This document shows positions 22,241-29,265 of a stretch of DNA of 64,000 nucleotides, piece by piece (positions within the stretch are counted from its first letter, which is position 1; each line of letters opens with the position of its first letter). Source of the DNA: Blastocystis sp. Blastoise (Eukaryota; Protista; Bigyra: Opalinata). The position numbers were made by a program, and so were the translations under genes. Location of the stretch: the NCBI GenBank assembly GCA_039096225.1, contig JBBPEB010000032.1:868001-932000 (forward strand), given 5' to 3'. The notes under the pieces were generated by a model, which ran no database searches, was not told the DNA's origin, and saw only the letters and a list, made by a program, of their open reading frames with translations.

Positions 22241-26482
<4,242 letters not shown>

Positions 26483-26649
26483 TTTTAACGACATAAACCT
26501 TATTAAAAGTCAATTGTCAATAACCAGAAAAACCCTCCCATTTGATAATTGTATAAATTTAATTAATCTATTTATTCTATACAACTATAAGTTACATATA
26601 TATATCAATATATATAAATGCTTCATAGAAGCAATGAACAATCAATTAG

Positions 26650-26878
26650 AAAAAAATATATAAATTAATTAACTGCACCACAAGGACAAACCTTTATTAT
26701 AAGGAGTATATCTCACTAATAAAGATGCAGAGGCCTATCTGTTATTTTAAATAAAAACAACAGAAAAAGAAGAATCTAAGATTCATATGAGTATAGAATG
26801 TCTATACATTTCAGGTTAGGGTAAAAAGCATACACATGTACACTTTCAGAGTTCCATTGAACCAATAGGCAACTTCCT
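26650..26878 (-). ncRNA. Candidate telomerase RNA (template ACCCUAACC for TTAGGG)
   Basis: Template at 26822-26814; 9-bp hairpin just 5' (26846-26825); GCCUAU/AUAGGC long-range stem (26870-26865 with 26738-26733); 3' stem CUGCAUC/GGUGCAG; T7 tract 26656-26650; TATATTAA ~20-26 nt upstream. Confidence 0.6.
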
Positions 26879-27154
26879 TTTTTTTCAAAAACAACTTAAT
26901 ATAGAGCCTAATCTGAAAAATGATTAGAAGTTTCATGTTTGTCGTTGAAATTATTAGAAGAATACTCTATTTAAATTACATAATAATACTCATTATTACG
27001 ATTAGCTAAATTTCTTCTAAATGTTTTGAAACTATAAAGGTAGTTTGATAAATAAAATAATAATAAGTCAACACTTTTTTCTTGAACATTATCAATGAGC
27101 ATTAAAGTTTTCTTGAGGTTCCTTGAAAACATAGCACAAGACCAAACAAATTGT

Positions 27155-27971
27155 TTAGAAGTAAATTTGTTGGACGGGACCCATGGAGGACTTAATGTAG
27201 AGGGTCTTAATATTTTGCCACTTCTTCTTAAGAAGAGAGACTAAGAAGTTGATGGAAAGATTGCAGTTAGATTTAAGTTCATCCTTAGTAAGATTAACGT
27301 GACCAACAGGGACGTTAAGACAAAGGACTTTCTTAAGTTGGAACTTAACAGTCTTGGAAATAGCATCAACCTTGGTAGCAGGATCTTCAACGGTGTTGAT
27401 GACAGAGGGGAATTTACCAGCCCTATATATTTATATATATATAAACAAATAATAGATTTATTATATATTAAATGAAATTATTGATGAAAAGCATATATAT
27501 ACTTGTTAAGACCAGGTCCCATTATACGAGGAAGCTTCTTGATGAGAGTATCAGAAGCAAGGAAGGAGTCGTACTTCTTGGCAAGCTTCTTGATGAGCTT
27601 CTTGTTCTTGTTAAGAGCAGTGATTTCTTCAACATTCATACAAGGAATGTTTTCTTTCTTACATAAATCTTGATGCTTTTCATTAACGAAAACACAAACG
27701 TTAAGATGAGCACGGGTAGGACAAGGAAGAACGAAAGAACCAGCAAAACGCTTATCCTTAGTAGGATCGTATTGCTTTAACATAACTTGAAGTTCAACGG
27801 TTTCAACGAAGTGTCTCTTCTTACCTTGGACTTTGGTTCCATCAATATCAACTTGCTTACCAGCAGAGTAATCAAGGATGGTTTGAACGGCCTTTTCTAA
27901 AACGTCACTAGGAACTTTGCTACTATATACAGACTATAAACAAATAACAATTAGCATAATACATACCTCAT
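27155..27971 (-). CDS. RPL10A: 60S ribosomal protein uL1/L10a
   Basis: FVETVELQVMLKQYDPTKDKRFAG, LPRIMGPGLNKAGKFP, KFQLKKVLCL, LKKKWQNIKTLYIKSSMGP; two GT-AG introns. Confidence 0.98.
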
Positions 27972-28053
27972 TGTTCGAATATATACTCGAGAAAATGTCT
28001 ATATAATGTGAATTCCTAAATTTTATGGCAAAAAAAATTAGAAAAGTTTTCAA

Positions 28054-28061
28054 GGGGGTAA
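28054..28061 (-). promoter_or_regulatory. TTACCCCC candidate ribosomal-protein promoter element (RPL10A/RACK1 divergent promoter)
   Basis: Identical 8-mer 83 bp upstream of the RPL10A ATG and 82 bp upstream of the RPS17 ATG. Confidence 0.5.
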
Positions 28062-28281
28062 GCGGTTGCTCCATATATTTTTCTTGTATAAATTTTCCAA
28101 GCACTTTTTCGAACCACTCATTTGGACCTTCCACATTTTTATGATTAACAATTTTGTAGCTATATTAGTTTGTATTGACTTTGGTTTCAGAATAAACATA
28201 AGTAAGTATATATTAATATGGAATTCAACTTTATCGTGATACCTTTTTTTCCACAAACTCTAAATCTTGTTTTACATAAAC

Positions 28282-29265
28282 ATGTCTGCCCAATTTACTC
28301 TTCGTGGACACCTTAAGGGTCACAACGGCTGGGTTACCGCTCTTGCCACTACTGTTGAAGATCCCTCTCTTGTCGTCTCTGCTTCTCGTGATAAGACTAT
28401 CTTAGTCTGGAAGATTGATCCCCAAAACGCTGTTGAAGAAGATGCCGTCAATGGTCCTTCTTTCGGTACTGCTGTTAGATCCCTTCATGGTCATAGCCAC
28501 ATCGTTTCTGATGTTGCTGTTTCTAGAGATGGTAAATTCGCTCTTTCTAGTTCTTGGGATAAGACTCTTCGTCTTTGGAATCTTACCACTGGTAAGACTA
28601 CTAAGGTCTTCAACGGTCACACTAAGGATGTTCTTTCTGTCGCCTTCTCCCCTGATAACAGACATATTGTCTCTGCTGGTCGTGATAATCAAATTAAGAT
28701 CTGGAATACCGTTGGTGAATGTAAATACACTTTAAGTGAAAACGGTCACAACGATTGGGTCAACTGTGTTAGATTCAGCCCTGCTTTATCTGCCAATGAA
28801 CTCCAAATTGTTTCTTGTTCCGTTGATAAACTCGTCAAGGTTTGGAACATGGAAAACTACAAGCTTACCAGCAATCTTGTTGGTCATGAAGGTTATGTCA
28901 ACTGTGTTGCCGTTTCTCCTGATGGTTCCCTCTGTGCCTCTGGTGGTAAGGATGGTAAGATCATTCTTTGGGACTTAATTGAAGGTCAAAAACTCTATGA
29001 ATTAGATGCTGGTGATTGTATTGAATCTATTGTTTTCTCTCCTTCTCGTTATTGGTTATGTTCTTCTACCACCAAATCCATTAAGGTTTGGGATCTTGAA
29101 AAGAAGAAGGAAATTGAAGAAATCATTCCTGCTTTCCCTGAAATGAGTAAGCACGCTACTGTTCCTTATGCTGTCTCTCTTGCTTGGACTGCTGATGGTA
29201 ACACCCTTCTCTCTGGTTACACCGATAACATCATCCGTGCTTGGGGTTACACCAGTACTGATTAA
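28282..29265 (+). CDS. RACK1: RACK1/Asc1 WD40 ribosomal protein, intronless
   Basis: [72 protein letters not shown]. Confidence 0.98.

Follow-up and report, generated by a model that had tools for sequence, protein, structure and literature searches.

A candidate telomerase RNA gene of Blastocystis with the signals of an RNA polymerase II snRNA-type gene

Telomerase RNAs (TRs) diverge so fast that most protist lineages have none known. Here, we describe a candidate TR gene in a stretch of 64,000 nucleotides (nt) from Blastocystis sp. Blastoise (contig JBBPEB010000032.1, positions 868,001 to 932,000; the whole of this stretch is called the window), where it sits unannotated on the minus strand between RPL10A and MLH3. 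It is probably the TR gene of this Blastocystis, made as a small nuclear RNA (snRNA)-type transcript of RNA polymerase II (Pol II), and the broader reading, that of a TR gene regardless of the polymerase, is very likely. We infer expression, the RNA ends, the polymerase, binding by the telomerase reverse transcriptase (TERT), and function from the sequence. A preliminary description of the window had proposed a TR gene transcribed by RNA polymerase III (Pol III). We keep the first part of that proposal, given the telomeres, the TERT gene, and the snRNA-type gene context documented below, and regard the second as probably wrong.

Template and gene context

The genome searched (34 contigs, 33.34 Mb) has the telomeres that the earlier proposal presupposed, with (TTAGGG)n at contig ends in the correct orientation (e.g., the end of C3 and the start of C4). 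It also has a TERT gene, seen as two exons that match the TERT-specific Telomerase_RBD (C20:672949-673545), and seen again, weakly, in a second search. Because (TTAGGG)n telomeres and a TERT gene are both present, a TR with a CCCTAA-phase template must exist somewhere in the genome. The template-like ACCCTAACC on which the preliminary description was built is located at 26822-26814 of the minus strand, and all of the other sequence elements listed there were likewise found on that strand where they had been placed. The candidate template, ACCCUAACC, would specify GGTTAGGGT and is complementary to more than one repeat of the telomere of the same genome. It should be stressed that the 9-mer ACCCTAACC alone proves nothing; it is the gene context that carries the case.

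The first part of that context is the upstream sequence element (USE), an 18-mer, AAACTTCTAATCATTTTT, that also lies upstream of the single U6 gene of the genome. There are four exact copies of this 18-mer in the 33-Mb genome, and they stand before U6, 7SL RNA, an orphan gene at locus L010, and the candidate. The core of the element, AACTTCTAATCA, precedes U1 (two copies), U2 (four), U3 (three), U4, and U5 (three), as well as U11, U12, U6atac, and a U4atac-like gene. The second part is a 3' box of the type that follows Pol II snRNA genes in this organism (see the next section). The flanking promoter and the 3' box are far beyond chance.

TR genes have been traced before by combining a USE with a template, in Blastocystis subtypes among others (PMC8287931). 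We counted 50 distinct loci in the genome that carry the USE core. A well-placed 3' box accompanies the USE only at the candidate and at those of the 50 that are known Pol II snRNA genes, which makes the candidate the sole orphan of the Pol II class. A telomere-complement 8-mer is found downstream of the USE core only in the candidate and in one repeated protein-coding gene, so that the candidate is the only RNA gene in the set with both a USE and a telomere template. In orphan USE-driven transcripts, ~0.006 chance 9-mers are expected (~885 genome-wide x ~440 nt / 66.7 million strand-nt), a figure that is our own arithmetic from the 9-mer chance model (a first-order model of the window, which has 26% GC, with six phases and both strands) and the orphan transcript length. 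It is because so few coincidental 9-mers are expected in such transcripts that we rate the TR reading, summed over the two polymerases, as highly as we do.

Other loci were considered and rejected as TR genes. Three that have the USE core and CTAACCCT (L066, L081, and L090) are copies of the repeated protein-coding gene (G000:C15:609762, C23:82092, and C28:300077), which begins MSLFFADVTNPDSRADYLLSVPP, has the USE core ~95 nt upstream of its ATG, and may be a mobile-element gene. The orphan L010 has a Pol III-type promoter and is without a telomere-complement stretch. For the candidate itself, an identity as U11, prompted by the A-rich AAAAAAGGAAG just upstream, was ruled out: U11 lies at C4:1684165-1684293 (62.9 bits), with a USE and a 3' box of its own. 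A search of the genome for RNase P gave no match, and its controls were silent as well.

Polymerase class

The promoters and ends of all USE-bearing small-RNA genes were aligned, and a class grammar was derived from them (snRNA loci surveyed: L009, L013, L015-L017, L072, L095-L101, L106, L108, L110, L113, and L114). One USE, AACTTCTAATCA, serves both polymerases in this genome, and the two classes split by the length of the gap to the A/T box, 12 nt versus 19 nt. In the Pol III class (U6, U6atac, 7SL, and L010), the USE is followed after exactly 19 nt by [TA]TA[AT]ATAG, transcripts begin 48-49 nt past the 18-mer and end in T6-T9, and there is neither an internal T5 nor a 3' box. In the Pol II class (U1, U2, U3, U4, U5, U11, and U12), the RNA starts 41-44 nt after the 18-mer. 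The TATA-like box stands at a 12-nt gap in U4 (TATATAAGC), U11 (TTTATAATC), U12 (TTATAAGTT), the U4atac-like gene (TTTAAATAA), and one U5 copy. Genes of the Pol II class have a 3' box, ATTAATTTAA (consensus ATTAAT[TGC]TAA), 2-9 nt past the RNA end. This box is present after U1, U2, U3, U4, U5, U11, and U12, and absent after U6, U6atac, 7SL, and L010. A T-run usually trails the 3' box in the Pol II snRNA genes, and several genes of that class contain an internal T5 (e.g., in the Sm sites of U1).

Set against this grammar, the candidate has the exact 18-mer, the box at 12 nt, and the 3' box of the Pol II class, together with a predicted start 41-44 nt after the USE, and it departs from the Pol III class in having no box at 19 nt and in having internal T5 runs. 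The upstream TATATTAA pointed out in the preliminary description is indeed present, starting at 26903. In the window, 3' boxes with at most one mismatch have a frequency of 3-4 x 10^-4 per strand-nucleotide, so that such a box would fall no more than 12 nt from the end of the helix with a chance of ~0.005. We placed the start of the RNA by the 41-44 nt rule (as in U1-U5, U11, and U12) and its end by the 3' box. A start at ~26874 would leave the helix that encloses the core intact. The small minus-strand RNA gene of ~230 nt that had been proposed is, on this view of its ends, more likely to be ~204 nt long (~26874 to ~26671).

The T7 run that had been taken to terminate the RNA is there, but the 3' box precedes it, and it is probably not the end of the RNA; because the candidate fits the Pol II class, we do not regard this run as a Pol III terminator. 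The worry voiced earlier, that internal U5 runs could end transcription prematurely, was well founded insofar as there are three such runs. In a gene with Pol II-class features, they would be harmless, and they therefore count against Pol III and not against the gene. The start of MLH3 (26482) is beyond the T7 run. Between the two, ~20 nt past the T7 run, the minus strand has a 6-bp hairpin, UGCUUC-UAU-GAAGCA (window 26617-26634). The one hint of a transcript is a sequencing run, X1, that may be DNA; it contains 39% of the sequence words in window positions 26400-27200.

The alternative that lies closest is the one first proposed, in which the same TR would be made by Pol III from a type-3 promoter and would end at the T7 run. 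We consider it unlikely. It has on its side the exact 18-mer USE common to U6 and 7SL (and in this respect the comparison that had been suggested with those two promoters came out as expected), the presence of a TATA-like box, a T7 run 16 nt past the last helix, and the literature, which groups the TRs of stramenopiles with those made by Pol III (PMC8287931). However, the comparison with U6 and 7SL fails for the spacing: the box is at a 12-nt gap, not at the 19-nt gap that is invariant in U6, U6atac, 7SL, and L010, and there is nothing like TAAATAG at 19 nt after the USE. With a Pol III-type start, the RNA would begin 48-49 nt past the USE and lose part of the enclosing helix. The three internal T5 runs have no counterpart in the Pol III genes of this genome, and both tRNA genes seen end in T5. 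Finally, a 3' box of the Pol II type is present where chance would put one with a probability of only ~0.005. The tRNA genes in question (Gln and Gly; L048 1893-1965 and L020 1055-1127) have one A and then T5, with longer T-runs further on, which suggests, from a small sample (two of 63 tRNA genes), that T5 is a Pol III terminator in this genome.

Several of the other sequences with the USE are worth recording in their own right. The orphan L010 (G000:C13:95452-95750; L010 1501-1800) has the exact USE, followed after a gap of 19 nt by TTAAATAG, and ends in T6 ~235 nt further on. Rfam gives no match for it and it is without a telomere template; one possible identity is a divergent RNase MRP, RNase P, or 7SK-like RNA. 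The U4atac-like gene (G000:C8:151217, minus strand; L048), which was missed by Rfam, has an RNA predicted to run from GTGTCATTCGTCC. At its 5' end, UCGUCCUUAUCG is a perfect complement of CGAUAAGGACGA in the U6atac gene (C21:544991), and the U4atac-like gene has a Sm-like AGUUUUUGA and a USE followed, after a 12-nt gap, by TTTAAATAA. With U11 and U12, this predicted gene completes the minor-spliceosome set. The USE core also occurs in two dispersed repeat families, either by chance or by descent. In the first, ATACTTCTAATCATTTTG is followed by T-rich sequence; in the second, TCTACTTCTAATCATTCTCATTCTACTTAT precedes CTT-rich sequence of low complexity, and copies often come in pairs ~1.45 kb apart. 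Sites of these repeats include many on G000:C15 (e.g., 129002, 140551, 166004, and 567612) and others on C28, at C4:1569481, at C16:940733, and elsewhere.

Predicted fold, relatives, and rival readings

The minimum free energy (MFE) fold computed with ViennaRNA reproduces all of the helices that had been claimed by eye, and in it the template stays single-stranded, in a 16-nt unpaired stretch. These helices are predicted from one sequence, without covariation. The long-range pairing GCCUAU/AUAGGC is among those recovered in the MFE fold, and it encloses a core with a small hairpin. The core also holds the 9-bp hairpin AAAGUGUAC/GUAUGCUUU (26846-26838 / 26833-26825), which, as reported, ends 2 nt ahead of the template. 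The three hairpins described between the template and the closing strand of the helix are also present, and the branched 3' domain CUGCAUC...GGUGCAG is located at 26730-26673. The last arm of the three-way junction predicted for this domain is the hairpin AAGG-UUUGU-CCUU (26694-26682). Coordinates of the main features are collected in Table 1.

Table 1. Features of the candidate gene and its RNA (window coordinates)
Feature	Positions	Strand	Remarks
USE, 18-mer AAACTTCTAATCATTTTT	26916..26933	-	exact copy of U6 upstream element
Proximal A/T box TATATTAAG	26895..26903	-	12 nt after USE
Predicted mature RNA, ~204 nt	26671..26874	-	5' end predicted at 26877-26871, 3' end predicted at 26673-26670
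Core-enclosing helix, 5' strand GCCUAU	26865..26870	-	MFE and centroid folds
Stem-loop 5' of template, candidate template boundary element	26824..26847	-	9-10 bp, ends 1-2 nt before template
Candidate template ACCCUAACC	26814..26822	-	1.5 repeats, ACC at both ends for re-alignment
Three hairpins and U-rich tract, expected pseudoknot region	26739..26807	-	hairpins 26807-26791, 26784-26772, and 26763-26739
Core-enclosing helix, 3' strand AUAGGC	26733..26738	-	MFE and centroid folds
Predicted 3' three-way junction	26673..26730	-	7-bp closing stem, long arm, 4-bp hairpin
Candidate snRNA 3' box ATTAATTTAT	26660..26669	-	3 nt past last helix; 9/10 positions match
T7 run	26650..26656	-	past 3' box, 16 nt after last helix

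The fold is better on the minus strand than on the plus strand (-51.4 vs. -38.8 kcal/mol; z -3.0 for 231 nt vs. z -2.0). The refined 205-nt RNA reaches an MFE of -51.4 kcal/mol (z -3.9), and 0/200 shuffles were as good. The isolated 3' three-way junction domain has z -2.2.

If the candidate is a TR gene of the Pol II snRNA class, it would work as follows. The USE would recruit the snRNA transcription machinery, and the minus strand would be transcribed as an independent small-RNA gene from a start near 26874, past the A/T box that stands 12 nt from the USE. The 3' box would direct 3'-end formation right after the last helix, giving the RNA its length of ~204 nt. In the predicted fold, the long-range helix GCCUAU/AUAGGC would enclose the core, and the hairpin 2 nt before the template would halt reverse transcription at the 5' edge of the template. 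A telomere ending in GGT could align on the 3' ACC of ACCCUAACC, after which TAGGGT would be templated, that is, one TTAGGG repeat per round. The identical ACC ends of the template (ACC-CUA-ACC) would allow GGT to re-align after each TAGGGT. The 3' three-way junction may be the TERT-activating stem-terminus element or a CR4/5-like element.

Relatives were sought through the genes next to the candidate and through metagenomes. A search with the RPL10A exon found GC-rich relatives on L123-L125, and there is no candidate RNA downstream of RPL10A on these contigs, which stop at the RPL10A stop codon or are without the element. A database search with RACK1 gave nothing above 62% identity, and a search with the MLH3 exon gave no matches. 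Metagenomes scanned for USE plus template yielded six hits, all at chance level. Two of the RPL10A contigs deserve mention. One (L124; a Logan contig of SRR29048511, 2028 bp, 54% GC) keeps the head-to-head RACK1-RPL10A arrangement seen in the window at 27150-29265, with 75% identity for RACK1 and 91% for the RPL10A exon. The other (L123; an ENA contig of ERZ773381, 7635 bp, 61% GC) has an RPL10A 80% identical to the exon in the window, followed by an ilvB-ilvN-ilvC-ilvD block that looks bacterial and by an AAA/DUF815 (ATPase-family) gene; either the metagenome assembly is chimeric here or the genes were acquired. Human and tortoise Blastocystis isolates share 40-42% amino-acid identity (PMC12129017).

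A number of results weigh against a Pol II-made TR at this locus. No homologue of the RNA was found in the relatives or metagenomes searched, so there is no covariation to draw on. Pseudoknots are considered a universal feature of TRs, and a systematic enumeration of H-type pseudoknots gave a best candidate (UUAGAU/AUUUAA plus CUGUUG/UAACAG, with the U-rich loop UCUUCUUUUU over an A-rich stem) that was matched in 38/100 shuffles and so has no support; the caveat first made by eye, that no clear pseudoknot could be assigned, holds under enumeration too. The 3' box has one mismatch to the consensus. Neither a Sm site nor another known biogenesis motif was seen in the RNA. The chance model predicts 1.7 telomere-complement 9-mers for a window of 64 kb, and a single one is present. 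Rfam (release 15, with TR families of ciliates, vertebrates, yeast, and others) gave no family at gathering score in the window and, for 26300-27300, no TR model even when E values up to 10 were allowed. A miss of the TR families is expected given how divergent TRs are, and the absence of any other family at the locus is in favor of the TR reading.

Some of these points can be turned into a different reading, namely, that the locus encodes a snRNA-type small RNA of other function (a lineage-specific small nucleolar RNA, a small Cajal body-specific RNA-like RNA, or a processing RNA) and that ACCCUAACC is coincidental. Chance telomere-complement 9-mers are common (1.7 per 64 kb), and the lack of pseudoknot support, of a TR family match, and of comparative support would all be unsurprising. 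We nevertheless judge this very unlikely. The figure of ~0.006 for coincidental 9-mers in orphan USE-driven transcripts speaks against it, as does the layout, in which an unpaired 9-mer with a helix 2 nt upstream of it lies within a long-range enclosing helix, as in a TR core. Moreover, no C/D boxes, H/ACA boxes, or Sm site were seen by eye in the RNA, and U11, U12, U4, U6atac, and the U4atac-like gene are accounted for elsewhere.

It could also be asked whether there is a gene here at all, or whether an AT-rich spacer, or else the 5' untranslated region or promoter of MLH3, folds well by accident. AT-rich spacers do form many hairpins, and the opposite strand also reaches z -2.0. This explanation is hardly credible in view of the exact 18-mer USE, the other three copies of which head known or plausible RNA genes, the correct placement of the A/T box and the 3' box, and the z of -3.9 for the fold.

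Known telomerase RNAs and what the candidate would mean

The closest comparison is with the TRs of human-type Blastocystis subtypes, which Fajkus et al. (2021) predicted in silico via USE and template (PMC8287931). In our literature search, this was the sole paper found that joins Blastocystis and telomerase RNA; the 2025 genome paper is without mention of telomeres (PMC12129017). The candidate resembles the human-type TRs in genus-level lineage, in the TTAGGG repeat, in the pairing of a snRNA USE with a CCCTAA-type template, and in that both are in silico predictions. It differs from them in its USE, AACTTCTAATCA here versus AACCCRTAA there, and probably in its polymerase, because the human-type genes were read as Pol III type-3 genes (PMC8287931) and the candidate fits Pol II. 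The same study found no homologue in Proteromonas (PMC8287931).

Like the TRs of plants and ciliates, which are Pol III transcripts of type-3 genes, the candidate is small and would combine a USE shared with snRNAs, a template-adjacent helix, a core-enclosing helix, and a 3' stem element. In contrast to them, it has Pol II-type TATA spacing, a 3' box, and internal U5 runs; it has no match to the Rfam Telomerase-cil model at E up to 10, and no pseudoknot was found in it. Promoters of the Pol II snRNA type have been reported for animal TR genes, such as that of the 135-nt lepidopteran TR, and a P1.1-type stem-loop has been described as the template boundary of many TRs (PMC11892584). The lepidopteran RNA and the candidate are both small RNAs without an H/ACA domain and with a stem-loop as template boundary (putative here, and similar to P1.1). 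They belong to unrelated lineages with unrelated promoter motifs, and the candidate keeps a predicted 3' three-way junction that the insect RNA is without. Pseudoknot, cap, and activity were demonstrated for the lepidopteran TR, whereas the candidate is known from sequence.

The predicted 3' junction of the candidate, with its closing stem, long arm, and 4-bp hairpin with a 5-nt loop, is built like the CR4/5 of vertebrate and fungal TRs. In the loop of vertebrate P6.1, the U at position 2 and the G at position 4 are absolutely conserved (the medaka loop is UUCGU; PMC3950677), and the candidate loop, UUUGU, has a U and a G at these positions. Unlike CR4/5, the junction is predicted from one sequence with z -2.2, and a motif this short could arise by chance; stramenopile TRs have not been described with a three-way junction of this kind. 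We take the likeness to P6.1 as a resemblance only and not as evidence of homology. The full combination would be a stramenopile TR that is made as a Pol II snRNA-type transcript, from a gene with a shared USE, a 3' box, and an A/T box displaced by 7 bp from its position in Pol III genes, and that ends in an opisthokont-like P6.1-type junction. In our estimate, the evidence for and against this proposition is evenly balanced.

The TRs of Blastocystis have so far been in silico candidates only, and from human-type subtypes only. If the reading is true, the locus, which standard annotation misses, gives the tortoise Blastocystis clade its TR. Another gain would be a clean grammar, open to testing, by which the small-RNA promoters of this genome can be assigned to Pol II or Pol III. 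Should the Pol II assignment be correct, the candidate would be a counter-example to the current view that Pol III makes the TRs of this supergroup, and the proposed rule that the TR is a Pol III product in Diaphoretickes and a Pol II product in opisthokonts would fail within Blastocystis itself. It would then parallel the opposite switch of TR polymerase that has been reported in Hymenoptera (PMC9841428), and would imply that such switching is easy wherever the snRNA promoters of Pol II and Pol III share a USE.

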